The position numbers were made by a program, and so were the translations under genes. A model generated the notes under the pieces. The model was not told where the DNA came from. It ran no database searches and saw only the letters and a list, made by a program, of their open reading frames with translations. Positions 23,891-44,862 of a stretch of 64,000 nt of DNA are shown in pieces (the stretch's first letter is position 1; each line of letters starts with the position of its first letter). Location: the NCBI GenBank assembly GCA_002104945.1, contig MCFH01000054.1, forward strand, positions 186,001 through 250,000. Direction: 5' to 3'. This DNA comes from Piromyces finnis finn. Its lineage: Eukaryota > Fungi > Neocallimastigomycota.

Positions 23891-26800
23891 TTATTGTTTA
23901 TTTTTTGAATTTTCTAATGGTATAGAAACAATTCCATAAATTTGGGATAATGAATTAAATAATAATTCGAAATTGTTTGTTACTAATTTGTATATTTCAA
24001 CAGGAATCTTTTCTTTACTAACACCAATATAATCTACCCATTCCCATGATGTAGCGTCACCTATAACCTTTAATTGAGGTTCTAACACAATGGGTTTTAT
24101 TGCTTTAAATACCATATCATCATCATCATCTTGACTCTTAAAGAGATCTTGATGTTTTTGAGACATTATATTAATTTCATCATTAATTTGTTTTTTATAT
24201 TCTCTCATCTTTTTCTTATCTTCATTAATATCATTTTCTTTAGAATTACCTGTTCGTTCTTGTTTTTTATTATTGGATTCGACGTTATAATCAATTGATT
24301 CTAATGTGCCGGTTCCTGGATTATCTTTGGAATCATTATTAATTGTACTCAAATATAATTTTATTACATTAATTAAATAAATATACAATCCAAAGTTAAG
24401 AGCAACATCAATAGGTTCACTGAAAGATGAGTCAAAGGAATACTCTATTAATTTCTCATGCAGATATTTACTTGCATTAAGATTAATAATTGTTTTTGGA
24501 ACATTTAATATATTTTTCGATACACTTTCCTCTAAATAAGCAAACCATTTGTCAATTTCAAGAGAATTTTCATTTTGCTTAGTTACAAATTTGTAACTTC
24601 CTTTAACTACCTTAATTCCATCACAGGAGAATTTTGTTTCTTCAATAATCCTTTTAATATCTTCTTTTTTAATAACTTGTTGTGTATCATAGTTTAGCTT
24701 AACATCAAGAACTAGCTTATTAGAGTTAAGTCTTACTGAATCAGGATCTTTAAAATTATATCTAAATGCTACAATTAATGCCTTTTCTAATGTGATTGTA
24801 ATTACACCGTAGAGGGAACAGAAAATTTTTGATGAAACATCAAATATATAGTCATATGCAATCTTTTTGATGATATTTTCTTTTATCTTTTCTTTTTCAT
24901 TCTTCTTCTTTTTCTCGTTTTCCTTGTCACTAATATTATTATTTGAAGAAAGTAAAAGTTGCTTTTCTATAATAAAGGAAGAAAATCTATTGTATATAGC
25001 CATGACCATAGAAATCGTCTTTTTGGAAACACATACTTTAATATATTTAATTACTGCATCTGTCTTTAAGAATAATTTTGGTTTTTCCATTAATTGATAT
25101 AAATCACTAATTACTAGGTAGATATCAGTTATATCTAATAAGAACGTTTTATCAAATTGGTATACCAAGTCAGAATATATTCTACCAATTTTATTCAAAC
25201 TTAAAGCTGAATATGAATTATTGTCTTTCGATAGTGATAAAATTGGATTTCTGACATCACCATTCATATTAATATTATCGATTTTCAGGTATCCTTGTAA
25301 TTTTCCTTCGGTAGTTAATGATATACTCTTAATGATAAAATCCGCATTAGATCTTGGTATATTCTGTTTAATTACTTTATTATAGCATAAATTTATCATT
25401 TCAAAATTAATATCACCTTTACCTGTAATCTGACTTAAATCATAAATAAAATGAATTTTCCCAATATTTGCCATTATATAGAATGAAAAGTTATTCTTAG
25501 ATGTAGATAAATAATCTGTAAATTCCATAGAAAATGATCTCTTTTTTCCGATAGTAGAACTTGTGTGACTATTAACCGATACGCCAGTATTACTTTTATT
25601 GATAGGTTCAATGGCATAATTAGTATTGTTAACATCACTACCTAAATTATCCGTTATCTTCAATAACGTGCCTACCCATACATCATATAATATTAAGAAA
25701 TCTTGAAGATATCTTATATTAAAATTCATTTTTATTAAAGGAATATTAAATTCTCCAATGTTAGAATAGTCAAGAATACTTTCATCAATATTTAAAAATG
25801 TATAATTAACAATAATTTTAGTTAGGCAAATGTCAAAGAAATGCTCAGGAGAATAGGTATTATTAACCAATAAAGATAAATCACTAAGGTTTAATGATGA
25901 AATAAATGAATGTCTACTATCGCTGCTTAATGCGTATATTGTAGTAAGAGATATGTTATTAAAATGGAATATACACATTGCATTCGAATCTGGTTGGCAT
26001 GATAAACCAAATTTTGTTTCACCTATATGCATATTTACACATAAAATATGACCAATAAATATAGAAAGTATATCTTTTATATTTGAAGGTTTTGACACTT
26101 CATTATTCTTTACATTTTGTTTTAATTTATCCTCTGTTTTAAACCTATAATTATTAATTTGAATAATATTAATAGTTGACTTTAAGTTTATAACAAATTG
26201 ATCAATAAATCTTATCAGAGATGGCCTCAAAATATTTTCTGTTCCAGATATATCGATATTCAGGAATATTTGATCAAAATCGGTATTCGAACAATCAATT
26301 AATTTTTGATTAACTGCTTTATTAAAACATAAAAAGAAACTAATTTTAGGGAAATTGAAGATATGAAGATTTACTTTTTTATTATTGCCATATTCATTAC
26401 TGTTATCAAATTCATTATAATTTGATGATATTTTTAATACTGAGGGTTCAAATTCACATTCTACTTTTATCCTACTTAATATTGAAAGATCAAATGATTT
26501 CTGATTTTTATTATTATCTTTTTTTGCATTAACTTCATTATCATTTTCCATTGAAATTAAATTTTCATAATCACTAAATCTTCTTAAACTTCTGTAATAC
26601 AATTTTACAATAAGATCAATATATATCGAAAGATCTAAATTTAAATCAATGGATACCCCATTATTTGAACTTTTAACTAAATACATATCTTCATTATTTT
26701 CATCCTTTATAGTATTTATTAAAACTTCACATTTTGGAAGAGCAATTCTATTTTCAACTGGATGAGCTAATGGTGAAAAGTTTTTCGAATCAAAAGATTC

Positions 26801-29800
26801 AATAAATTGAATAAATATATCATAGAGTCCAAAATTAGAGGAATTTTTTAAGAAATCCGTATTGAATCTTAATAATCTTAAATACATATAAAATACTCTT
26901 CCATTTTTCGTTATTGGTGCTGAAACATTATTTATATCAGCTAATGGTATAATGGTGGCAACTCTACTTATTGTAACATCTAGTATTAAATTATCTAAAA
27001 ATTCAAATCCATTTGTATTATTATTATTGTTGTTACCATTAATATTGCTCTCTTTATTACTATTGCTATTTGTAAGAGCATTAGTACTTTCTTCTTTAAT
27101 GTTATTTTCAAATGATATTTCATTTTTTTTTATAATATTTTTCTTTGAAAAGTCATTTTGAATTTTCTGAATTTCCGTTTTAAAGGACATTGAAAATTTC
27201 ATAAACTTTTCTACAGATATTACGTGTAATATAGAATGAACATCTTGAATTTTAAGATTAATTTGTTGTTTGATATTTTCAGGATCATTATTAACCATGA
27301 TGAAGTTATTATCCAAGGATAAATCAATATAAAGATAGGCTAATCTATTACTGACTTGATAAATATTATTTGTTATTGAATTAAATGATAAACATATATT
27401 TTTTGAAGATAATTCTCCTAAAATTTTGTTTTTACTAATAAGATTTCCACTTTCAATTTCTTCGGGAGAAAAGTCGTTGATTTTTGCTTTTCCGTGTAAA
27501 CCTGTGATATTAAATGAAATATTTTCAGTTTCAGTTTTAATAATGATTTGGAAGTCTTGCAAAAATAGATATAAACATAATTTAATGTCATATTGCTCAA
27601 ATATATCTTTCTTTTCTTCTGCTTCTTTAACTTCTTCAATTTCCTTTATTTTATCTTCTGTACTTTGATATATATAGAATTTATTATATAAACTTTTAAT
27701 TTGTTCTAATTCATCATTTACTAGGTATGGTAAGAGTACAATGGCTTTTATAATTGATGAAGTAATTTTACAGTGGTACTTATTTAAAACAATATTGGTT
27801 TTAATATTAAATCCAAGATTACTTTTACTACTATCTGTGATGATTATACCTGATATGTTGACTTGTGGTAATTCTGATGAAAAATCACTATCATTACTTT
27901 CAATATACTTATTATTTGTAAGATTTAGTTTAACTTTTGGAGCAGAAATGTTTACTGAATATAAATACATGATTGAATTTGCTTGAGTTTTATCTCCAGC
28001 TTTATTTAATTCTATATAATAATTTGGGAAGTCGATGACCAAACCAGCGGATGAAAATAAATCCATTCTTAAATTAATACTGTTAAATATAAATTTGATA
28101 CCAATATTAAAATCATTAAGAAGAGAAATATCAACATCATTCCATAGTGTACTTTCTTCCTGAATGTATGCATTCTTTGATAGTGCCTTTTCATCCTCTT
28201 CTTTAGTGTTGGATTCAATTTCATTTGTCATTTCATCAATTAAATATTTATACTTGTCTAGATATTCATCAGACCATTTATCAAATATAGAATATAACAA
28301 TATAATGCTTTTTAATACATTAATATTAAGGGAACCTAATGTGACAAGTAATGAAATTTTTTTTGATTTTTCAATAGATTTTGATTTTAATTGTTCAATA
28401 ATTAATTTATTTAAACCACCATGAATACTGAAATCATTAAAATTAAGCTTTACTAATTCATTTTTAATTGGTTTTTCATTATTATAAATGTTTTTTTCTA
28501 TTAAGCTAGATGATAAAGAGGATACCTTCATAACAGTATTATGTTGAATAATCAATTTCTTTATTGTACCCGATGATACATCATTTTTATAATTATAATG
28601 AAGATTTAACGATTCAATTGTTTTGATATGGCTTGGATTGGTATTGTCAAACATTAAATTATAGGTAGATACTGATGAATTATCCAGTTTACACTTTAAT
28701 TCTATTGTGGTTGCTGATGCTTTAACACAAATAGTTTTAATGGAAAATAAACCGTGGAAAATATTTAAATTCTTATGTTTTCTTCGTGAGGATATATTTT
28801 TAATTGATTCCATAATTGTACTGTTGTTAGTATTATTATTATTATTAATTGTATTATTAGAAGGGATTTTATTTAATTTATCATCTTCTTTTTCATTCAT
28901 TTTGGATAACCAATTAATTGCCCTTATACTATGCTTAGCTAATATAAATAAATTTCCATTTAACACTATATTTATTCGACTAATACCACCATAATATAAT
29001 ATATCATAATAATATTTATTTGCTTCGTAATTCATTTGATCATTATCACTAACTAGTTCTTTTGGCTTCATTAATAAATCTGTTTGGATTTGACCAATGT
29101 TAATATGATTTTTCTCAACCTTATTATCGAATACTTGCAATTGAATCTTTCCAATCTGTAAACAAATTCTAAGATTAGATGGAATATAATTTATTATGTC
29201 AACTTCATTTTGATTTTCAATAGTGTTATTTTTAACTTGTCTATTAAATATTATGTTAATTATTTCACTATTTTCTGATACATTTTCCCAATTATACCAA
29301 TCTATTAAATTTTTCATAGTAATATTATATAAATTATTTTTATCATTAATAGGAATTAAAGTTTTTAAAATATTTCCTGGACGTTTTTGCAATTCGTTCA
29401 TAGCATAACGAATATGGAATAACAATTTCCATCCCGGATCAGATTTATGTGGACTGGTTCCCAGTCTCCACATTGGCGAAGGTTGTGTTAAAAATGTTGG
29501 ATTGGATATAATATGTAATCTATTGGATTCTTTAACAACAGTTGCTATTAATTTTTGTAACTTCCTATTGTTATTATTAAAATCATCAAGAATTGTCATT
29601 AAACTTTTAATGAAAACTATCCATCTAAATAAGGAAGAACTTATTAATTCAAGTGTTTGATTAATTATTGAAATATTAAAGTTTGTTAGATTAAATACCA
29701 CTGATGATTGTGTTAGTGTTTTTATTGGATTATAATATAATTCTAATCTAAAGTTATCGATACACATGTATAAATATGTTGGGTTATGTAATATTTTTAA

Positions 29801-31300
29801 TGTATTGTTATTATAATAATTTGTATTAATATTCTTTTCTTCATCTGGAATTAAAATACCAGTAATACTTGTATTATCAAATTCATTAATAAATCTGAAT
29901 ATATCTTGGATTTTTGAAAATTCAATAAATGTTTTTACTTCTCTCAATTCTGATAAAGATGCATTATCATTTATATTGACTTTTTGACTTATAAAGAAAT
30001 TTAAAAATAAATCTTTTATAATAAATTCGTTAAATGATAATGTATTTTCAGGAGTTCTCATACTATTTTCATTTAAAAATGTTTTTCCTACTTCCGGGAA
30101 TATGACATCTTGAATACTATGGATACAGAGACTAGGTAAGTTTATCAACAAACCAAATGATGATAAAATTTCTTTTATTTTCTTCTCCAACAATATACCA
30201 ACGTACTTTATCTGGAATAAATCAATAAACGTTTCATCTGGTAATCGCTAAATATTATATTATATAATAATTTATTATTTAATAATTTGTTAATGTTAAT
30301 ATTTAGTAAATATTTATTTTTATTTATTCTACTATATAAATTAATCAATATACGTCATAATCTAATGCTTCCACAAATTCCTGAATAATCTTTATACATA
30401 TAGGGGTAATAACAATATTTAATGATTTTGCAAAATCAATAGTTAAAAATACACTATCTTCATTTTCCCTATCCTCATTCAAATCAAAATATGACAAACC
30501 ATTTTTAAATTGTTCATTTTGTAATATTGTTTGAAATGGTAAGTAACTATCATTATCATCATTATTTGCTTCTTTGATAGCATGTATATTATTATTCTAT
30601 TTATATAAATATAATTATTTATATTAATTTAGTAAATATATATATATTCTTTTTTTTTTTATTGGTATTAAATAATTTATTTACATTTATATCATAGAAT
30701 CTATTTAGTGGAGGCATAATATCTGAATTTATTTCACTTGTATATAATGGTGTTGAATCCACTAACAATTGATAGTTATTTAAATATTTTCTATATGGTA
30801 TAGGTCTTTTTTTCGATTCTATTAAATATATTATTTAATTATTAATATTTTAATAATTTTATACTTTTTTAATAAAAAATTAATTATTAATAAAATAATT
30901 ACCATTGATAGCATTTGTTGATACAAATTTTCTTAAATCATTCTCAACATTAAAATCACTTTTACTTTTCTTCCCGGTCTTTGGTTTAAAAAACATATTT
31001 TCATTATCAGAATCACCACTTCAATATAACATATTAATATAGAATAATGTCATTTTAATAAAATTTTTAAATTACCTCTTTTATCTTGAAAATAAAATAA
31101 TATTACCTAAATTCAAAATATTCATTTGATCCATTTTCATTTTTATTCTCATATGAATATAAACTTGATGATATTGATTCACTAATTGGTATTTGAATAA
31201 ATATAGGTAAAAGTTCAAAGTTTTGTTTTCGTGAATGGGTATCTTTATAATTATGTTTTGAAACTAATTTTATAAATAATTATATTATTTTTAAAAAAAA

Positions 31301-31365
<65 letters not shown>

Positions 31366-34300
31366 AATTATTATTATTATGTTTATTATGTTTATTATGA
31401 TGTTTATTATTATGTTTATTAATATATTTTTTATTATTGATAATACCTCTAAATGGAGGAACTAAAACCGGAACATAACTATATATTTTCTCTTCTTCGT
31501 TAATACTTGAAGCATTACTATCTTGATTATCATTATTTTCATAAATAAATGTCATTCTTTTAGTTAGTCTATCCTGGTGTCTAATAAACTCAACTTGTTT
31601 TTCATATAATTCTTTCCAATCTGGTGTTTTTAAATAAATACATAAAGATAAGTTTGTTTCAATACTTGCAACTTCAATCCAAGGGTATGAAGATTCAATC
31701 TAAATTAAAATTATTATTGTTTTTTTTTCTATTAGTTATTATTTCTAATTTATTATTATTTTTAATTTAATGATTATTTAAATATAACAAACATCTTTAT
31801 TGGTTTCAGCTAATGCTAATAAATATACACCAACAAATGGGAAATCTAAAAATATTCTATTGCAATAATGAGTATTTATAGTGTTATCCATTTGAAGTTT
31901 AAAACCATCTTTTAAAAATAAAATTGTTGAACTTCCTTTTCCCCATATTGATAAATCTATTTTATTCATAGTTAATTGTAATGAAAAGAAATCACTAGTT
32001 AATGGTAATTCTAAAATTGCATTATCAAAATCTGAAAAATGATATAAAAAGGTTTCCAAAAAATTCACAAAAGATACTATAAAAAATGGATGTACTTCTC
32101 CAACTAATGATCCAATATTAAATCTCCAATCTGCACCATAAACTAATTTATATGGCATAGGACCAAACATTCTGTGTCCATATATTGATAAATCTTATAT
32201 ATTATTTAAAAAATATAATATGTATATATATAAATTTAATATTATTATAATTTTTATTTCTGTAAGTTTACAAAATCATTACCATCAATATAGAGAAAAT
32301 CATTAGAACAATTCTTTTCAAATACCATAATAGGATTCGTATTAATTTGAATATCTATAAATAATTTATCCATAATAAATTTATTTAATTTACATTCATT
32401 AAACAATTATTTAATAGTATGTGGTAAATATACCTTGAAATTGATCTGTTCCTCTAATTTCAACTTCAAGAAGTTTTGTTTTTAATGTAATATAATTCTT
32501 ATAAGTATATAAACTTTCTGGTAAATAAGCCTCTACATTTTCCGCTTGAATTAATATATTCATATCTAAAGCATTCATTGGCTCTAATTCTAATTGATTT
32601 TGATCATTACTTTTTTCTTGATTTTTTTCTCTATATTCCGATACTGTCGTGAATGAGGCATAATCACCAAAATAATTATCTGCTATTAATACAAAATATT
32701 TAATTAAATAACCAAACACTTTAAATGACACACCGGATCCCTAAATAATATAGATATGAATAATTTATGCTTAAATATTAATAATACATATTATATTTTA
32801 GATATTTTATACATATATATCTAAACAATACCCCTATTTTTAAATTCATTGAATCAACATATTCAGGATTATAGACGGCATAAAATGAATAGTCACCTTC
32901 CAATTCAAAATTATTTATAACACCTACAGGATTTGATTCTTTATTAATATTTTCACCTATTGTATGTGATTTTGGTAGTAATATATCTAAACTTAATGGA
33001 GTATTTTTTGTCTGTTTATATATATTTATTTGTATGTATATTAAATTAATGAAAAAAAGATAATATTTAAAAATGAAAATTATATTGTATTGATTCTTAC
33101 AGAAACTTTAAAGGGTATGCATGAATAAATTGGATTAAATACAGTAAATGGTAAATTTACATTAATGTCTAACAAATCTCCTGATAATGTTAAATAGGCT
33201 ATAAAGATAAAAGATATATATATTTAAATGGTTAATTTCATATTCTATATTACTTTTTTATTATTGAGTTGATTATATTATTATTAATTACAGTTTTGAT
33301 CTATTTCATTAAGTTGATTTATAATGTTGCATTCATTTATACACATTAGTATACTATATTCTTTAAATGTAATATTAATATCATATATAGTTGGAACAAA
33401 ATAATCATTTTCAATTGGTTCACCCTCTGTCCAATCTGTAATTAAATCAGTAATTAATGTTATATGATCTTTAAGTAAAAATATTTTTGTTTCTAAAAAT
33501 TGAATATCAAATGGCATTGTACGTTCTTGATTCCATTTTAATGGTGCGGGTATCGTTGCGTTAATCTAATATGAAAAATGAAAAATAAATATTATAACAA
33601 TTTTTTAAAATATAATGTACATGGTTATTGTCACTTGAAAATTTTTATTGTATTTTTTTCAAATTTATATAAATTATTGAATATTTTTGGGAAACAAACT
33701 TTTAATTGAGAGCCATTTAAAAATACTGCATAATCAATACTAGTAGTAACTTTTACATTTAATAGATTTACATCTAATTTTCCTTCATATCCTTCTTCTG
33801 ATATAAACGATGGAAGTTCATAATAAATGTGTGATCCTTCATCAAAATTTACATCAAGCCATGCATATGGTCTTACACTTTGTTCTTTTCTTTTATCTTT
33901 TTTAGATTTTTATTATCATTATCATTTTGATTTTTCCACAAATTATCCTATTATATATATAGAGAGAGATAGAGAGAGTATTTTTAATATTTATTAATTT
34001 TTTTCATTTCAATAAATGAATATATACCTTTGAATGTTCTTTCGTCGGTACTCTTGCTGTTCCTTTTTCTTCGAAAATTATAAATAATTTCATTGCTGGT
34101 GCTACTCTTAATTGACCTGATGTAGGAGGACTTACTATTTCCATATCTCTAAATGAAAGAGGATAAAAGAAATACTGTAATAATAATCTTTTAAAGAATA
34201 AATATAATTAATAAAATATATATAATATTTTAAATATATGTCATATTAAATAATAAAAATACCTATTTCTATCCGTCCATGGACCATAATTTAGTTGTGC

Positions 34301-36155
34301 ACTATATAATTTTATATCAATTCTCCATTCAGGTAAATTTTTCTGACTTTCTTCATAATATTCTGAATTGACTGGAGGAACTGGACCTAATTAATATAAT
34401 TTGTTATAAAGAATTGTACTTAATATTATGCATTTACACTTTTATCAAATTTTCGAATTTCGATGCAATATTAATATAATATATATCAACCTGTAACATC
34501 AGAATACATTGAAAGAATTAATTCTTCTGATTGAAGTAGTATGGGAACACGTGCATATTCATTTTTATCATCTTTATTTTCACTTCCTTTATAATTATTT
34601 TGGTATGTATTAAATGGAATTAAGGCTTAATTATTTACATAATATATAAATCATAATATTTATATTATAAAAAGGATATCTTGCAAGTCCAGTCCATGTT
34701 GTTTTCTTTATATTACTTTCATTTTTAGTATTTTTTATTTTTTTATTTTTATTAAATAGATAATTAAATGTAAAAACATATTTTACCCTATCTTTTAATG
34801 ATTTTTTAGAACTTTTTATATTTTTTAATATTTAATATAATAATATAAGAATAAATGTTTTTCTTTAATAAATAATATATTAAAATATACATTAAAATAT
34901 ATTATAAGATTTATGATTATTACCTATTGACAAAGTTATTAATGTCATTTTTTCTATAATTTATATGATCTGAATTTGCTCTTATACTAACTACAGGTTT
35001 TATTAAATCAACATTCAATTTCGTCATATAATAATCAAAAATTGAACTTGCCTATAAATCATTAATAATTATAAAGTATTAATTATAAATTTAAATATAT
35101 AAATATAAAATTATTACAATGACTTACTGTATCAACAGAATAGGAAACTTTCATTCCATTAAAATCAGCAACTAAAATTGAAGGAAGATCTCTGCTTCCA
35201 ATATATACAGCACCTTTATTAACTTCTACATATATTGGTAATAAACTTTTAAATAATTTATCTTTATTGACTTTATTTGGAAGAATATATTCGCCAATAT
35301 TTGTCACATTCACTTTCAAAAAAATAAAACCATCAGTTTCATTCTATTACTTTTATTATATATATTATATATATATCCATATTTATTATAACGATTTTTA
35401 TTTTTTGTTATTAATTTTTACCTGCTACGCTTTCATTAGATTCTCTTCTTAATATTCTTTTTAAATCTTCATATACTGCCATATTGTTATATATGTAATA
35501 TTCCAAACCTTCTGCAAATACTCTCACTCTTGATGGTTTTTCTTCATCATCTATATTATTTTATATTAAATTTATAATTATTTATCACACCAAATAAATT
35601 GTTAATTATTAATACATTACCTCTAAAATTTGAAACAAGTTGCATTTGTTTTTCTTTTTTCGTTTTTGCTTTATTAATGAATGACCAAAGTACTGTAATA
35701 TACCCTCGTTCAATATAGATTGATTCATTTTTTGATATATAACTCAATTTTTTAAATAATATTGTTCCACTTAAAGGACATATTACAATATTTTCTTATA
35801 TAAAATAGATATTAAATGTATATTTAATATAATTAAGGAAGGTAATAAAGATAAAACTAATTTTTATAATAATATACCTATATTAATTAAGGTATTTAAT
35901 TTGGGCCAGGTGTATATATTAATCAACTTTATGAAAATAAAAGTAAAGAATCTACTACTATAGAGTAGTAATAAATATGCTAATAAAACTATTAGCAAAC
36001 ATCTATATATATTATATAGATCAAATGTTAATAAATAATAATAAAATTATAATATTATAACTTTTATGTTGTTACCTTATTGTTAAATTTATAAATTGAA
36101 CAAATTTATCTTTCGATTGTACTGGCTCTTCGAAATAAACTTCATAAAGAGCCAT
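23891..36155 (-). CDS. CSF1: Bridge-like lipid transfer protein Csf1/BLTP1 (KIAA1109/Tweek family); about 23 exons, terminal exon 23891-30247
   Basis: N-terminal TM helix followed by LYSSRFFTFIFIKLINIYTWPK; NESIYIERGYITVLW; GLEYYIYN; LLPIYVEVNKGAVYIG; EYARVP; PEWRIDI...YGPWTDRNR; RPYAWLDV; IYGHRMFGPMP; C-terminal LEPQLKVIGDATSWEWVDYIG. These match my recollection of fungal Csf1 blocks. One apparent single-base frameshift lies near 33910. Confidence 0.88.
31305..31420. repeat. (TTA)n microsatellite in a CSF1 intron
   Basis: About 20 uninterrupted TTA units followed by degenerate TGTTTATTA units. Confidence 0.9.
34607..34679 (-). other. U12-type (minor spliceosome) AT-AC intron in CSF1, 73 nt, phase 2
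   Basis: Minus strand: GCA AG|ATATCCTTTTT...AAGCCTTAATTCCATTTAATAC|A TAC CAA. Splicing gives TTWTGLAR-YQNNY. Read-through of the unspliced intron reaches TAA. Confidence 0.85.
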
Positions 36156-37346
36156 TGTTATTTTATCTTGTCAATATTACTAATTTGTTAATTGATAATA
36201 AATTTCATATTTTTTAATTAAAAAGAATTTATATATTGTTAATGCTGCTGTTTTATTTTATTTTACTTTATTTTATTATATTTTTTTTATTAAATAGTTT
36301 GGTTTTGTTTTTATGTCAATGATATTTTAAATTCTATTATTATTTCTAATTAAAATTTTTTAGATAACAAATTTAACACGATAATATAAATTAATTTATT
36401 TTAATATTTAATAATTTTTTTTTTAAAAAAAAAACATAGTGGAAAAGAATATATTTAATTATTAATAAAATGGGTTATAATAATTATATTTCATTAAATA
36501 CTTAAAACTATGTTATTAATTATTATAGATATAAAATATTAATTAAATAGTTAAAATGTTTATTGCTTGAGTTAAAATAACCTTAAATGAATATTCTTGA
36601 TTTTTTTAATTTTAATCAATAATATTAAGTAAAATAAAATTATTAAAATCAATGGTTATTTATTAAATTATACTTTAGAGAATTAATTAGAATTAATTCT
36701 ACACTACTATCAATTTTCCATATTTTCTAAATTGCAATGAATACATATTACATTTAATTAATATTTTTAAAGCCATAAAATAATGTTTTTATCTTAAAAT
36801 ATTTACCTGCGCTATCATCACTACATTTAAAGACTTTATGCATATACAAAATTTTAATAGTAATATGGTTATATTATCACTGAAGTGTTTATTAATTTTT
36901 ATTTTTAATTATTTTTTTGTTCAATACAATCAATTATGGCAATGTTAACTGATTAAATTATACTTAATATAACTAAAGAAATAAATAATTCAAAATATAT
37001 TTTAATATGTTTTTAAATAATAAAAATGAAGTGTTAAGTAGAACAAGATAAAATTGAATAAATATTATAATATTTAACTTTTTTTTTATTAAAAGGTTAT
37101 AAATTCTTTTTTATAACCCTTTTTTTATTTATAAGTTTTTTTAGTTTTAAAAAATTTTATTAATAAACTTTTACCATCGGGTATTTTTTTTTTTTACATA
37201 TAGAATAACTATAAAAATATTTATATTTTATCCAATAAATTTTTTGTAATAATTAAATCGTTTTAAATATATATACATTAATTATTAACTTTATTAACGA
37301 CAACTTTTACTAAAAATGATAAAGAATCTAATACCAAGGAAGTAAC

Positions 37347-40300
37347 ATGTTAAACTCAAAAATTGAATCTGATGATAGTAAATTCATAAATGGTTCACAT
37401 TCACTGCGTTTGAATGTTATTATTGACTATATAATTGAGAAAGGTAAAAAAATGAAGAGATATGATAGTAACATGATCTTTTAATAAAACATTTATCTCT
37501 TTCATTAATATATTAGATATTCTAATTAATGGTGAGGTTAAGTCCAAAGAAGAAGTAGAAGAAGAAAATAAGAAAAAAAATATTAAAAATACTAAAAGTA
37601 AAAAAGTAGTAAATCTAATAAATCAACAAAATCAAGTAAAAAAAGTAAAGAAAAGGATAAAAAGAAAAAAAAAGATGAAGATGATGATACAAATTATTAT
37701 TTTTCATATTGCATTGCTGGAAAAATTGATGGAGAAGTAAAAGAAAATTATTAATAATTATTAATCAACTATAAACATATTAAATTAAAAAAAAAACTTT
37801 TTTTAAAATGTATTATGCGTTATAGACCGATGTGATTCAATATTCAGATTCAACATTTTCAACATTTCATGACATAGATATAAACATTGTATGAATATTA
37901 AAAAAATATAAATAAATTAATAACATCTATCCATAGATTTAATTCTATAGATTATTTTAATATAAATATGACATATTAAAAAAAATTATATTTTTAAAAT
38001 TCTTATAAATATTATTGTATATCATAGGACTTTTTAAAAAATTTATATAGTAAACAAGTGGAAATAAAAATATGGAAATTGATACCTAATTCAGAAAAAT
38101 CAACATCAAATGAACACATACATAAGCAAATACGAACAAAGAAGTTGAATACAAATAATAGGAAAAGTATTTGCATACCAAATCAATTAAAATTACAAAA
38201 ACAAATACCCTCTAATATTAATCAAGGAATAATACCTAATATTAAAGAAAATAAGAGTGAAAAAAATTCTAATAACGAAATGGATGATAATGAATCATCA
38301 AATCAATCATCCTTAATAAACTATAATTTTTCATTAATACCAATAAAACCAGTATATGATAGTCTTCAACAATTAAATTTCCCATTTAGTAACATTCGCA
38401 GTACATTTTCAAATTATAATTCAAAATATAAAAATAAGTTTATGAATACTGAACAATTAAGAAATCATATTTCAGGAAATGAGAATATGATGATTGGAGG
38501 TGACATTAATAATAGATATAATGGTGGAAGAAATGAATTATGGGGAAATCATCATATTAATATATTAAATGGAGATTACGTTAACGAATTTGATAATACA
38601 ATTCATATTGTACCGCACCCACATCATTTTATGGTACCCGAAAGATATTCAAGAATCCATAATTCATATTCAAGAGGAGGTTCACCAATTCGATCTTCTT
38701 CAAATAATCGTTCAAGATCTCGTACTAAAAGTAAAAAAAGAAATAGTAATTCAAAAAAAGATGAGGAAAAAAAAAATAGTAAATCTAGTAAATATGGAAA
38801 TAAATCTTATGATTGCTATTATGATGAAGAATTATATCCACGAAAAGGAAGAAGCAGGAGTAGATCAAAATCAAATAATAGAAGTAATAATAGAAGTAGA
38901 AATAATAGTAGAAGTAGAAGTAATGTTAGAGAATCAGGAATAAAAAATAGAAGGTTAAAAAATGGCAATAAAGATGATAAAAATAATAGTAAATCAAAAG
39001 GAAGTAGGAAGGGAAGAGATAAACTTTCGAAAAGAAAAGAAGAAGATCAATATGAAATGATTGGAAAAATGACATTAGATATTTGTAAATTATTTTTTGA
39101 TGAATATGAAGTAGAAAAAAAGTAAATAATTTAATTACTCTATTTTTATTTTAATATAATTAAATAATATTAAATGATCTAAATAAAATAATAATAAAAA
39201 AAAAGATTAGATTATCCAATAGGTGAAGTTAAATATTTTGGATTTAAATTATCATTGTCAGAACCATTACTATCGAAAAAACAAAGAAAATTGTATGATA
39301 ATGGATTTTTAAAATATATATTAAATAATTAAATAGTTAAATGCTTTACAAAAAAAATAATGTAATTGATTATATCTTTTTTTTTTTTTTGATTATTAGC
39401 TTAAATCCTATTGCAATAGAAATTGTTTCAGCAAAATCAATGCCACCTAAACCAACTACAAATAAAGTCAATTATGCAACAATAGCACCAACGTAACTAT
39501 ATGAATATATAAATAATATCATAATTTTTTAAACAATACTTTTTGTATTTACATTCTTTTATATATTATAATTTAAAAAATAATAAAAAAACAAGATATT
39601 GCAAATTTTCATTTATTGATAATGAAAAGGAATATAAATGTTTTGAAGAATGCCGCAAAGAAAATAACAAAATAATTTTCAATTCAGTTCATCTATTATT
39701 AAGTGGAAATATAAAAGAAGAAGATCTTTTTAATACTTTAGTGTATAAAAAACTAAATATAGAAGTAATTGTTATATTAAATATTAAAGTAAGATTATAT
39801 TTAAAGATGTTAAATTAAAAAATATATATATAATCATCATCACATAGATACATGATAGAGATTATGAAGTTCCAAAAGACAAAAAATATATTTCTAATAG
39901 TAAGTTTAATATTTCTATTTAAAAATATTTTATTAAAACTTAAAATAATGATTTAATACATATTTTAATATATTACTCTAGAATTTGATTACGTTGAAAG
40001 TTACAGAACAACATATATACCCAATATTATTTATGGTGTAGCTTCATTTTGTAATTATCATATTCATTTTCAATTTATTAAATAATAATATATGAATTAT
40101 TTTATTAATATTAATTTACATAATAAAGCATTGGCACCATTGGTAACAGGTATTAAAGAATTAACTTTAACAGCACCTGTTGAAACAAACTATCATATAA
40201 AAGGTATTAAACTCTATTGTAAATTATATCATATATAAAATTATTATTATTACATATATTAATTTTTAATAATAAATTATAAGACAAAGGAACAGACTTT

Positions 40301-42211
40301 GTGGATTCAGTAAATTATATTGAATATGGAACTTCCTTAAGAATAAAAGTTTCAATGGCATACCCAATTCTTAAAAATTCAATAACTAATATAAATGAAA
40401 TCACCAACTTTAAATTTTCAAGGATAATCATTATTGCAGAGTAATATCTTAAAAAAAATATTTTTTAATTTTCATATTTTATTACATAAAGCAAAACAAA
40501 AAAAAAATTAATAATATCGAAATAATTCATTCATTCATTTATTTATTTATTTATTTATTTATTTATTATCATTTCTATTATTAATCCAACAGCAAAAATG
40601 ATAATCAAAGTATATCATCTTTGATTAAAATTATTAGTGAGTTTAATATAAAAGAATTTTTTAATTTTGAATTAGAACAAAAGAAAAAGATGTCTATAAA
40701 TGATGTAAAATTAGGGAAAAAAGATGAATTAAACAATAAATTAAAAAATAAGAAAGTAAATAAATTAAAAGAAAATCCTAATGATGATAAAAAAACATGT
40801 AATAATAATACTTTATTAAATGAAAGTGACAATGAAAATAAATCTATTGATGTTATCGAGAATTTTGATATTGAATCATTCAGAATTGATAAAGAACACA
40901 TAAATAATCCAGAACTAGTACATATTTTATTTATATTAATATAATAAACATTAAAATACTGTTATATTAATCTTTCATTCAATAATATAAACTAGGGTGT
41001 TATAACCGGATTTCATATATATGATGAAGAACATCATATGATATTTTTAGAGGGTCCCAAAAATAATATTCAAACCTTAAGAGATATTTTAAATTCAAAG
41101 TAAAAATTTACATGAAATTAATAAATATTTATATTATATAGGATATTTATGTTAATTATTTTTTTTAATTGAATTTATTTTTTAAAACAAAATTATAAAT
41201 ATTTTGAAGTGATTTTTTAAAATTCAAGACATTCCACTCCCCTAAACTAACCTTTTATAAGAGATTATGGACATCATTTTACATATCTCCAATATATATA
41301 CACTTAAAAGATAATATACCATCATTATTACTATTAAATGATACATATTTAAAATGTCATACTCCAAAAACCACATTAGAAACATTGAAACTTTTAGAAA
41401 TTGTATTATTTAAAATTATAAAAAATTTTTTTATTAAAATATATTTAATTAACAAATTTGTTTTTTCTTCTTTTACTATAATAGATTATCGAATGTAATT
41501 CAATGGAAGAAATAAATTCAAAATTATTATTCCCAACGTATGAACAATTAAGTTCTTTAATAGGAACAGTAGGACAAAATGTTACAACATATGAATTTTT
41601 ATTACAATTAAGTACTCATCAAAAACAAGAAATAACATCTTATTATACCCCTGATGTTGTAGAAGAATCAGTTACATTATCTCAAAAGAAGGAAAAAACT
41701 AATAATAGTAAAAAAATAGACAATAATAACTATCTTTATTTAGAATTAATTAAGAAAAGACTATATAGAGAACCAAATTATATTAAACAAAATATTGTGA
41801 ATATCTATTTTTTAAAAAATAAAGTTATTATTTTTAACTTTACTAATAAATAATATTAAATTATTTGTTAAATAGGATAAATTCCATAATCTACAATGCC
41901 AACAAAGAGAAAGGGTTTATGGAAATGAAGGAATTCCTTATAATTATAGTATACAATACTTAAATAGTTCAGAATTAAGAAAAAAAATGTTACAAGAGGA
42001 ATACTCAAAGGTTAATATCAACTTTTTTTAGAATAATGAAATTATACTACTACAAAATACACATATATATATATATTTATTAATTATTTTTTTTTCTACT
42101 ACAAATTCTAAATTTTTTTTAATAATCATATAGTACATAAAGGTTTTAATTCATTCATATAATAAGAAATATAATTCACAAAATTTTGAAATATATAAAA
42201 CCGATAAATAA
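37347..42211 (+). CDS. CFAP92/KIAA1257-like (DUF4550) cilia/flagella-associated protein; about 17 exons, both ends uncertain
   Basis: Spliced blocks HDIDINIDFLKNLYSKQVEIKIW; LSLSEPLLSKKQRKFLNPIAIEIVSAKSMP; YCKFSF...IEIHDRD; YGVASFSLAPLV; VITGFHIYDEEHHMIFLEG; LFPTYEQL; YNYSIQYLNSSEL recall CFAP92 conserved blocks in the right order. GT-AG junctions are phase-consistent except for one homopolymer frameshift near 37600. Confidence 0.7.
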
Positions 42212-42531
42212 CTTTTTATTCAACATAACTATGATTATTATGTATAATAAATATCATTATAATAATTATTTTATAATTAATAAAAAAATTTCTATTTTTT
42301 TTAAAAAATACATTTAAATTAAATTAATAGAAGCAAAATGTATACAAATTTATATGTAATGTAATTTATAAATAAATAATAAAAAAGAATAATTATTTTA
42401 ATAAAATTAATAAAACCATAAAAAACCTAAAAATAATATATATTGTAAATATAAAATTGTTGTGATAATTATGAAAAATAGTGAATATATTATAGTAATA
42501 AGTAAAGTTCATTTTTAAAATTTAGGTAAAT

Positions 42532-43901
42532 ATGGGAAAGCATTCGCATGATATTCCATGGAAAAAATATAAAGAAATTCTCGAATTTGAAGGTTATTAT
42601 TTGAGTTTGTCTATTTCAATCATTCATTTTGTATAATATATATTATTTATATTATATATTAAGATCCTAATAAAATATAAAAGTTTAAACTAATTCTTTA
42701 TAATTATTGAAAATATTTTTCATATAACCCTATGTATAATTTCACATTAAACAGAGCCTCCTGAAAAACAGTATATAAAAGGTAAATATTTAATTTTTGA
42801 AATTAATTAAAAATGAATATTTAATAATTAAATATTCATTTTCTTTTCTTTTCTTTTTTTCTTTTTCTTTTTATACTTTTAATATCAAATAAAAAATAAT
42901 TCTAATTAATATATTTTTCAAATTAAAGACAAAACAAAATCTGAATTAGAATATTCTGTTCTTTTAGAAGATAATATCCTTTATAATATTATTGAAAATA
43001 ATATAAATTCGTTATAATAGTAAAACCATTTAATTATTATTCCTTAATTTCACAAAATTAACACAAGAAAATATTTAATATACCAATAGAAGATGAATTT
43101 ATAGTAGTTTCTTGTAATACTTGTAAAAAGCCAGTTTTACAAAGTGCTTTATTATACCATTTAGGTAAGCAAATTTATAAATAAAAAAATAAAAGTAATT
43201 TATATTAAATAAAAAAAAAATTTTTTAATAACATAATAAATAATTAGAAAATTGTAAAAAGATAAAAAAAATTCAAGAAGAATCTGGTCCTTTGAAAAAA
43301 GATATTCAATTAAGTGTATTCTATGCCTCTAAACCACTTCCAGTAGTAAAACCAAAGAAAAATAAGAAAAGAAAATTAACCGAGGGTAAGAAAGACAAAC
43401 TTTTTAAAAAAATTTTTTTTTTATGAAAATTAATAATTAACTAATTAATATAATAATAGATGGTCAAATTATTGAAAAAGAATCTAAAAATAAAGAAAAT
43501 GAAACTGTAAAAGAAAAGAAAAAAGCTAAAGATAATGATAATGCTAAAAAGTCAACAAAGAAAAAGAAAGGTAAGAAAAATTATTGATAATATAAGCATT
43601 AATTATAAATAAAAATTTTAAAAAATTGTAGAAAATAGATAGGGTATAATTTTTTTTTTTTTTTTTTTTGTAGTGAAATACTAATAGATTATTTAATTAA
43701 TATATATACTAAATAAATTATTTAGGTCCAATTGATCTAGATAAACAATGTGGTGTTATGACAGAAAATGGTACAGTATGTACTCGTTCTTTAACATGTA
43801 AGATCCACTCAGTATCAGCAAAACGTGCTGTCCAAGGAAGATCTCAAGATTATGATACACTATATAGAGCAACGAGTAGATTAAAAGGTAATAATAATAA
43901 T

Positions 43902-43934
<33 letters not shown>

Positions 43935-44318
43935 ATTTTATAAATACATTACAATGTGTTTATGTACTTTTACTAAAAGTAAAAAAAAAAAAAATTAACA
44001 CCTTATCATTTTTATCTTTTTTTTTTCTTTCTTTTTTTAGAAATGGCTGCTAATCAATTAGCAAATTCAATGGCAAAACAGAAAAAAGATGCAAAAGCGG
44101 CTGCTACACGTAAAGCACTTAAAGATGCTGCTGAAGCTGCTGCTAATGCAGCTACACTTGCAGCTGGTATACCTATACCAACAAATTCAGATGAAGAAGC
44201 CGAAGTTGTATATACAGCTGTTAAATATCATCAACCTACACCACTTTATATGAAAAATCCTTTCTCATTAAGAAGACGAATTGCCATGTTTCAATATCGT
44301 GAAGAATTTTGTTCCTAA
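42532..44318 (+). CDS. SGF73: SAGA deubiquitination module subunit Sgf73/Ataxin-7 family; 8 exons
   Basis: Zn[21 protein letters not shown]; SCA7 domain [44 protein letters not shown]; C-terminal [19 protein letters not shown]. Confidence 0.92.
42974..43062 (+). other. U12-type (minor spliceosome) AT-AC intron in SGF73, 89 nt, phase 1
   Basis: GAA GAT A|ATATCCTTT...TTCCTTAATTTCACAAAATTAAC|AC AAG AAA ATA TTT. Splicing gives [18 protein letters not shown]. Unspliced, the frame stops at TAA 43015. Confidence 0.88.
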
Positions 44319-44862
44319 TAATATATTATGTAATATATAAATTTTTGGTTCCTAAAAATTTTGTAAATAATAATGAAATTACTACTCTCTTTAATACCAA
44401 AGCGATGAAAAGAAAGCTGAAAAAAGATAAATAATAAATATAAATAATTAATCAATATCAATGACTGTAATAATTAAAATACATATATTATATATATTTC
44501 CTTTAATCGTTCAATTAATTTCATATTCATTTATATAATAATCCTTATTAATATATTAAATATACATGTTCATATTTTTAAGAAAAAAAAAAAAATCAAA
44601 TTTCTACTATCACTATGATTTATTATTTAAACTCATTATAAATAAAATATATCACAATAAATAATATTAAAACTAAATAAAAAATTAAAAAAAAAAAAAG
44701 AAAAGAAAAGTGATAAGTTTTCCTTTATTTTTAAAAAAGTTTTATTTTTTTTTTTATTTTTCTTTTTTTTTACTTTTGAAACCAATTTTTCTTTAATAAT
44801 ATTTTTTTGACTATAAATTTAAATACATTCCTTTATAAATAAAATTGTTAATGGGTTTAGAA

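Follow-up and report, generated by a model that had tools for sequence, protein, structure and literature searches.

The 64-kb window analyzed here (the whole stretch of DNA of the anaerobic gut fungus Piromyces finnis, GenBank assembly GCA_002104945.1, contig MCFH01000054.1) contains two segments that, judged from their sequence, are very probably U12-dependent AT-AC introns. One of them, intron 1, lies in the Csf1/BLTP1 gene, and the other, intron 2, in the gene for an SCA7-domain protein. An earlier reading made from the DNA alone (the sequence-only reading) had interpreted both as U12-type; this interpretation is supported, for intron 2 by complementary DNA (cDNA) of relatives and a public protein, and for intron 1 by conservation across genera. 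Both introns are predicted to depend on the minor spliceosome for their removal. They were found where that reading had placed them, and the shared donor, the CCTTAAT branch box, the spacing, the AC ends and the restored reading frame were all verified. Their parts are listed below (nt, nucleotides; a slash marks a splice junction).

34679 to 34607, minus strand: intron 1, U12-type AT-AC, 73 nt, phase 2 (AG/A), from the sequence and the composite motif scan
34679 to 34671, minus strand: 5' splice site of intron 1, ATATCCTTT, the motif standing at the first intron base
34625 to 34619, minus strand: branch box CCTTAAT of intron 1, branch A 13 nt from the last intron base
34608 to 34607, minus strand: 3' terminus AC of intron 1
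42974 to 43062, plus strand: intron 2, U12-type AT-AC, 89 nt, phase 1 (A/AC), from the sequence and the composite motif scan
42974 to 42982, plus strand: 5' splice site of intron 2, ATATCCTTT, the motif standing at the first intron base
43042 to 43048, plus strand: branch box CCTTAAT of intron 2 (context TTCCTTAATTT), branch A 15 nt from the end
43061 to 43062, plus strand: 3' terminus AC of intron 2

With its flanks, intron 1 reads ...GGACTTGCAAG/ATATCCTTTTTAT...TTAAGCCTTAATTCCATTTAATAC/ATACCAAAAT on the minus strand, and intron 2 reads ...TTAGAAGATA/ATATCCTTTATAAT...TATTCCTTAATTTCACAAAATTAAC/ACAAGAAAAT on the plus strand. Removal of either intron restores the frame. CCTTAAT is one of the variants that the usual TCCTTRAY branch consensus covers and represents no peculiarity. 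U12-type introns are defined by [A/G]TATCCTT at the first intron base and TCCTTRAY about 8–20 nt before the 3' splice site; here intron 2 carries TCCTTAAT at 15 nt, and intron 1 carries GCCTTAAT at 13 nt, with G instead of T in the first position.

The window is extremely AT-rich, with a GC content of 19% overall and 15%–28% across 4-kb bins. The ATATCCTTT 9-mer occurred three times against 3.04 expected, and RTATCCTT seven times against 8.8 expected. Since the 9-mer is present at chance frequency, its sharing by the two introns is by itself no evidence, and it is the composite that counts. The composite was defined as the donor, CCTTAAY 25–200 nt downstream, and AC or AG 9–16 nt past the branch A; two instances were found in the window against 0.106 expected (P(≥2) = 0.005, 1,000 second-order Markov simulations), a probability computed before exon placement or frame enter. 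The chance argument of the sequence-only reading thus fails for the shared 9-mer alone but holds for the full composite. The remaining RTATCCTT-like sites (14563, 10589, 33787, 25289, 51549, 50382, and 28795/28525) lacked a branch box or lay within open reading frames (ORFs), and were rejected as introns.

Intron 2 interrupts the following gene.

42532 to 44318, plus strand: SCA7-domain (Sgf73/ataxin-7-like) gene, 8 exons, 307 amino acids (aa); its other six introns are GT-AG

The product belongs to the SCA7 family, since it has the SCA7 zinc-binding domain (Pfam PF08313, E=2.3e-25) and, ahead of it at the N terminus, a C2H2-like zinc finger; PF18508 was below the curated cutoff on a single exon but appears in the precomputed family assignments of the complete protein P0158. 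The 8-exon model coincides residue for residue with P0158, the NCBI/UniRef "SCA7-domain-containing protein [Piromyces finnis]", so that the public annotation already contains intron 2 by implication. When metagenomes were scanned with an SCA7 exon, three cDNA-like metatranscriptome contigs of related anaerobic fungi (L001–L003) were recovered, whose exons are 80%–90% identical. Their BLAST alignments to the window jump from about 42973 to about 43063, and the GT-AG introns are jumped as well. The junction in these contigs reads GAAGA[A/C]AA[C/T]AAGAAAAT, compared with GAAGATA+ACAAGAAAAT in the window. Five further orthologous proteins contain LLE-x-NKKIFN (LLExNKKIFN) over the junction. Enumeration of every frame-keeping single intron between the exons flanking intron 2 yielded none of the GT-AG or GC-AG type. 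We regard it as extremely likely that intron 2 is a genuine U12-type AT-AC intron.

Two of the relatives' contigs show further features of the transcripts of this gene. In L002, aligned to 43063–43572, the AT-AC intron is gone and the two downstream GT-AG introns are kept; this contig represents an incompletely processed transcript that had lost the minor intron while other introns were still in place. The 4-kb contig L003, aligned to 38282–44320, covers an upstream FLJ43738-like gene, the unspliced intergenic region 42132–42590, and the whole SCA7 gene, which reflects either read-through or overlapping untranslated regions, or an assembly merge of neighboring transcripts.

Intron 1 belongs to a much longer gene and is bordered by a very short exon.

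36155 to 23891, minus strand: Csf1/BLTP1 gene, with the Pfam domains Csf1_N and BLTP1_N; the public model P0151 matches the window at 100% identity
34715 to 34680, minus strand: 36-nt micro-exon S-NIKKTTWTGLA-R upstream of intron 1, from frame analysis, with an inferred 5' boundary
34606 to 34492, minus strand: exon that follows intron 1 (YQNNYKGSENKDDKNEYARV...), within which the partial public model P0151 starts, at 34581

Intron 1 was compared in four taxa, namely P. finnis, a close relative (L052–L054), Anaeromyces robustus (L062), and a fourth anaerobic-fungus taxon (L063), the genomic contigs of the relatives being reached via exon-sized ORFs. AAG/ATATCCTTTT was found at the same codon position in all four taxa and is identical in L052, L062, and L063, and the 3' end AAYAC/ATAYCAAAATAATTATAA (AAYAC/ATAYC) is likewise kept in all four. 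The interior of the intron is unalignable or carries 12- and 5-nt indels, indels being present even in the close relative. The branch box varies across the taxa: CCTTAAT (P. finnis), CCTTGAT, GTTAAC (A. robustus), and CTTTAAT (L063). The orthologous Csf1 minor introns at L062:6256–6340 and L063:5208–5293 have a perfect ATATCCTTTT donor and the degenerate boxes TTGTTAACT and TCTTTAATT.

The flanking exons are conserved as protein. Eleven of the 12 residues of the micro-exon peptide are identical in A. robustus, and the same number in L063. The spliced product ...TWTGLAR/YQNNYKGSENKDDKNEYARV... aligns without gaps to the full-length Csf1 of other fungi, with which it shares W-x-G-L-x-R-Y, followed by a 14-residue hydrophilic spacer and EYA; in these alignments, 46 high-scoring segment pairs cross the intron 1 junction. 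Intron 1 is thus in all probability a genuine U12-type AT-AC intron, and it is presumably removed from P. finnis RNA. A 125-aa peptide across the Csf1 junction had no match among proteins 69–219 aa long, and a search with a Csf1 exon returned exon-sized anaerobic-fungus ORFs and distant full-length proteins, with no junction-crossing transcript-derived fragment. The 968-aa model of A. robustus is compatible with either structure, since dynamic programming reached its 2,907 nt both with and without the AT-AC intron.

Several observations weigh against the U12 interpretation. In A. robustus (GTTAAC) and L063 (CTTTAAT), intron 1 has a degenerate branch box. Two fungi other than anaerobic gut fungi (L067 and L068) have no intron at this Csf1 position; they share the next Csf1 intron position, after ...DV(A/T)G. 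An Rfam scan at gathering thresholds found no small nuclear RNA (snRNA) in the 64-kb window. For intron 2, the registers 42974–43062 and 42976–43064 give the same protein (AAC versus AAT, both Asn), and the protein alone cannot set the register; the U12 consensus does. The support for intron 1, finally, consists of conservation and protein alignment.

The nature of this support, together with the chance frequency of ATATCCTTT in the composition of the window, would also fit a different explanation of intron 1, namely that it is a chance match and that Csf1 is really spliced by the GT-AG intron 34638–34572, giving ...GLARYPFYNINIMIYILYDKNEY...; this is the sole in-frame GT-AG option and has a typical GTAAAT donor. 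However, its GT is missing at the aligned site in L052, where ATATCCTTT, branch box, and AC terminus all persist. Moreover, ATACCAAAATAATTATAAAGGAAGTGA, which would be intronic under the GT-AG splicing, is 100% conserved and encodes YQNNYKG in four taxa, and the resulting product would contain a hydrophobic insert disrupting the 14-residue spacing to EYA observed in other fungi. Splicing of Csf1 by the GT-AG intron is therefore highly improbable, and removal of intron 1 as an AT-AC intron remains the preferred reading.

The public annotation bears on the same region. In GenBank, Csf1/BLTP1 is split into a 257-aa gene (36155–34920) and a "partial" 2,983-aa gene (34581–23891). The 257-aa model terminates by read-through into an intron, and the 2,983-aa model opens at 34581 with ENKDDKNEY.... 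The gap between them (34582–34919) contains the micro-exon and intron 1, so that intron 1 has no place in the public annotation, and the break falls exactly at these two elements. Both models and the Csf1 exons of the window contain PF21678 and PF20413, consistent with membership in this family of bridge-like lipid-transfer proteins of about 3,000 aa, and the 2,100-aa ORF 23891–30193 (minus strand) is 100% identical to the partial P. finnis protein BCR36DRAFT_586752. The existence of two separate models would also fit a Csf1 that in P. finnis consists in fact of two genes or is in decay, with 34582–34919 being non-coding and the motifs being relics. This is the least probable of the explanations considered, with a chance close to negligible, because A. 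robustus and L063 preserve the protein sequence of the micro-exon and of the exon that follows intron 1, the full-length Csf1 of other fungi can be aligned to the joined product without interruption, and one A. robustus model (968 aa) spans the region split in P. finnis. RNA data agree with this: the same-organism runs contain 0.37–0.49 of the sampled words from both gene regions, which about matches the exon share of each region, roughly half by a rough hand tally, and thus the exon share of the Csf1 region is represented. The two GenBank models should be one Csf1/BLTP1 gene.

Other features of this gene were noted. At about 34004–34095 (minus strand), the public model P0151 reads ...SPPTS/DKRKEQS... 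and omits 30 residues, GQLRVAPAMKLFIIFEEKGTARVPTKEHSK, for which the window has an open frame and which both A. robustus and the Csf1 of distant fungi conserve (PGQLRV...PTKE.SK); the omission looks like a second error of the public Csf1 model. The segment 35347–35390, upstream of the exon starting near 35316, looks intronic to Csf1 by frame reading. The Csf1 of A. robustus is likewise represented by two public models (968 and 2,261 aa), and the gene order FLJ43738-like, Csf1, RRM/FoP protein, UQ_con is common to P. finnis and A. robustus (L062 versus window 13891–44581).

The absence of minor snRNAs from the window could also be taken to mean that the AT-AC introns, although real, are spliced out by the major (U2-type) spliceosome, which happens with a minority of AT-AC introns in other eukaryotes. 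U2-type AT-AC introns generally carry ATAAGT-like donors. Both introns described here instead combine the complete U12 donor ATATCCTTT with a TCCTTRAY-type box placed at the U12 distance, the donor of intron 1 is invariant across genera, and P. finnis is reported to possess minor snRNAs (PMC10639083). Removal by the major spliceosome is accordingly very improbable, slightly more so than a chance match at intron 1. As for U12-dependent splicing, the mechanism expected from knowledge of this intron family would begin with the U11/U12 di-snRNP (small nuclear ribonucleoprotein particle) recognizing the donor (ATATCCTTT) jointly with the branch box (CCTTAAT). U4atac/U6atac.U5 would then join, and U6atac would displace U11 from the donor. 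Through two transesterifications the exons would become joined as AG/A in Csf1 and A/AC in the SCA7 gene.

The sequence-only reading had left open whether the minor introns of this lineage were already catalogued. They are: P. finnis is named among the Neocallimastigomycetes with minor introns and with most, or all, of the minor snRNAs (Larue & Roy 2023, PMC10639083). The work of Russell et al. 2006, as cited in that paper, also concerns U12-type introns. The density of about 2% put forward from the window is not supported as representative, given that the highest fungal minor-intron densities in the survey were 0.554% and 0.272% (Larue & Roy 2023, PMC10639083) and that the window had been flagged for holding two such introns. 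A literature search on minor introns in KIAA1109/ATXN7 returned nothing usable.

Minor splicing in P. finnis has thus already been published (2023, PMC10639083), and the present result is a confirmation and a gene-model correction. It provides independent confirmation that minor splicing signals exist in this species and that those of the Csf1 intron are conserved between anaerobic gut fungi of different genera. What is new, and minor, is the apparent presence of an unannotated intron 1 and a micro-exon that split the public Csf1 model, along with the conservation of the predicted intron across anaerobic-fungus genera. Since the Csf1 model was cut at an unrecognized AT-AC intron and micro-exon, annotation-based counts of minor introns are likely underestimates in this lineage. 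The practical value is small, and the known distribution of the minor spliceosome among fungi is unchanged. It is conceivable, albeit unlikely, that anaerobic gut fungi run a somewhat altered minor-splicing system. Such a system would combine a strictly conserved ATATCCTTTT donor with a relaxed branch box (GTTAAC, CTTTAAT) and very short minor introns, and its complement of introns would exceed that of annotation-based surveys because introns like that of Csf1 break gene models and go uncounted.

The closest known systems are the U12-type AT-AC introns catalogued throughout eukaryotes and in early-diverging fungi, P. finnis among them (PMC10639083), with which both introns share the ATATCCTT donor, a TCCTTRAY-type box 10–15 nt from the 3' end, and the AC terminus. 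Non-zero phases (1 and 2), old conserved housekeeping hosts, and a host species for which minor snRNAs have been reported are common to both as well. There is no difference in kind; the introns found here are short (73 and 89 nt) and reside in an extremely AT-rich genome. Unlike the catalogued U12-type introns, intron 1 lies outside public models and has a degenerate branch box in two related taxa; since it is absent from these models, an annotation-based catalogue probably missed it. With the U2-type AT-AC introns, which generally have neither the ATATCCTT donor nor the TCCTTRAY box, the two introns have in common the AT and AC terminal dinucleotides, but here both the donor and the box are present.

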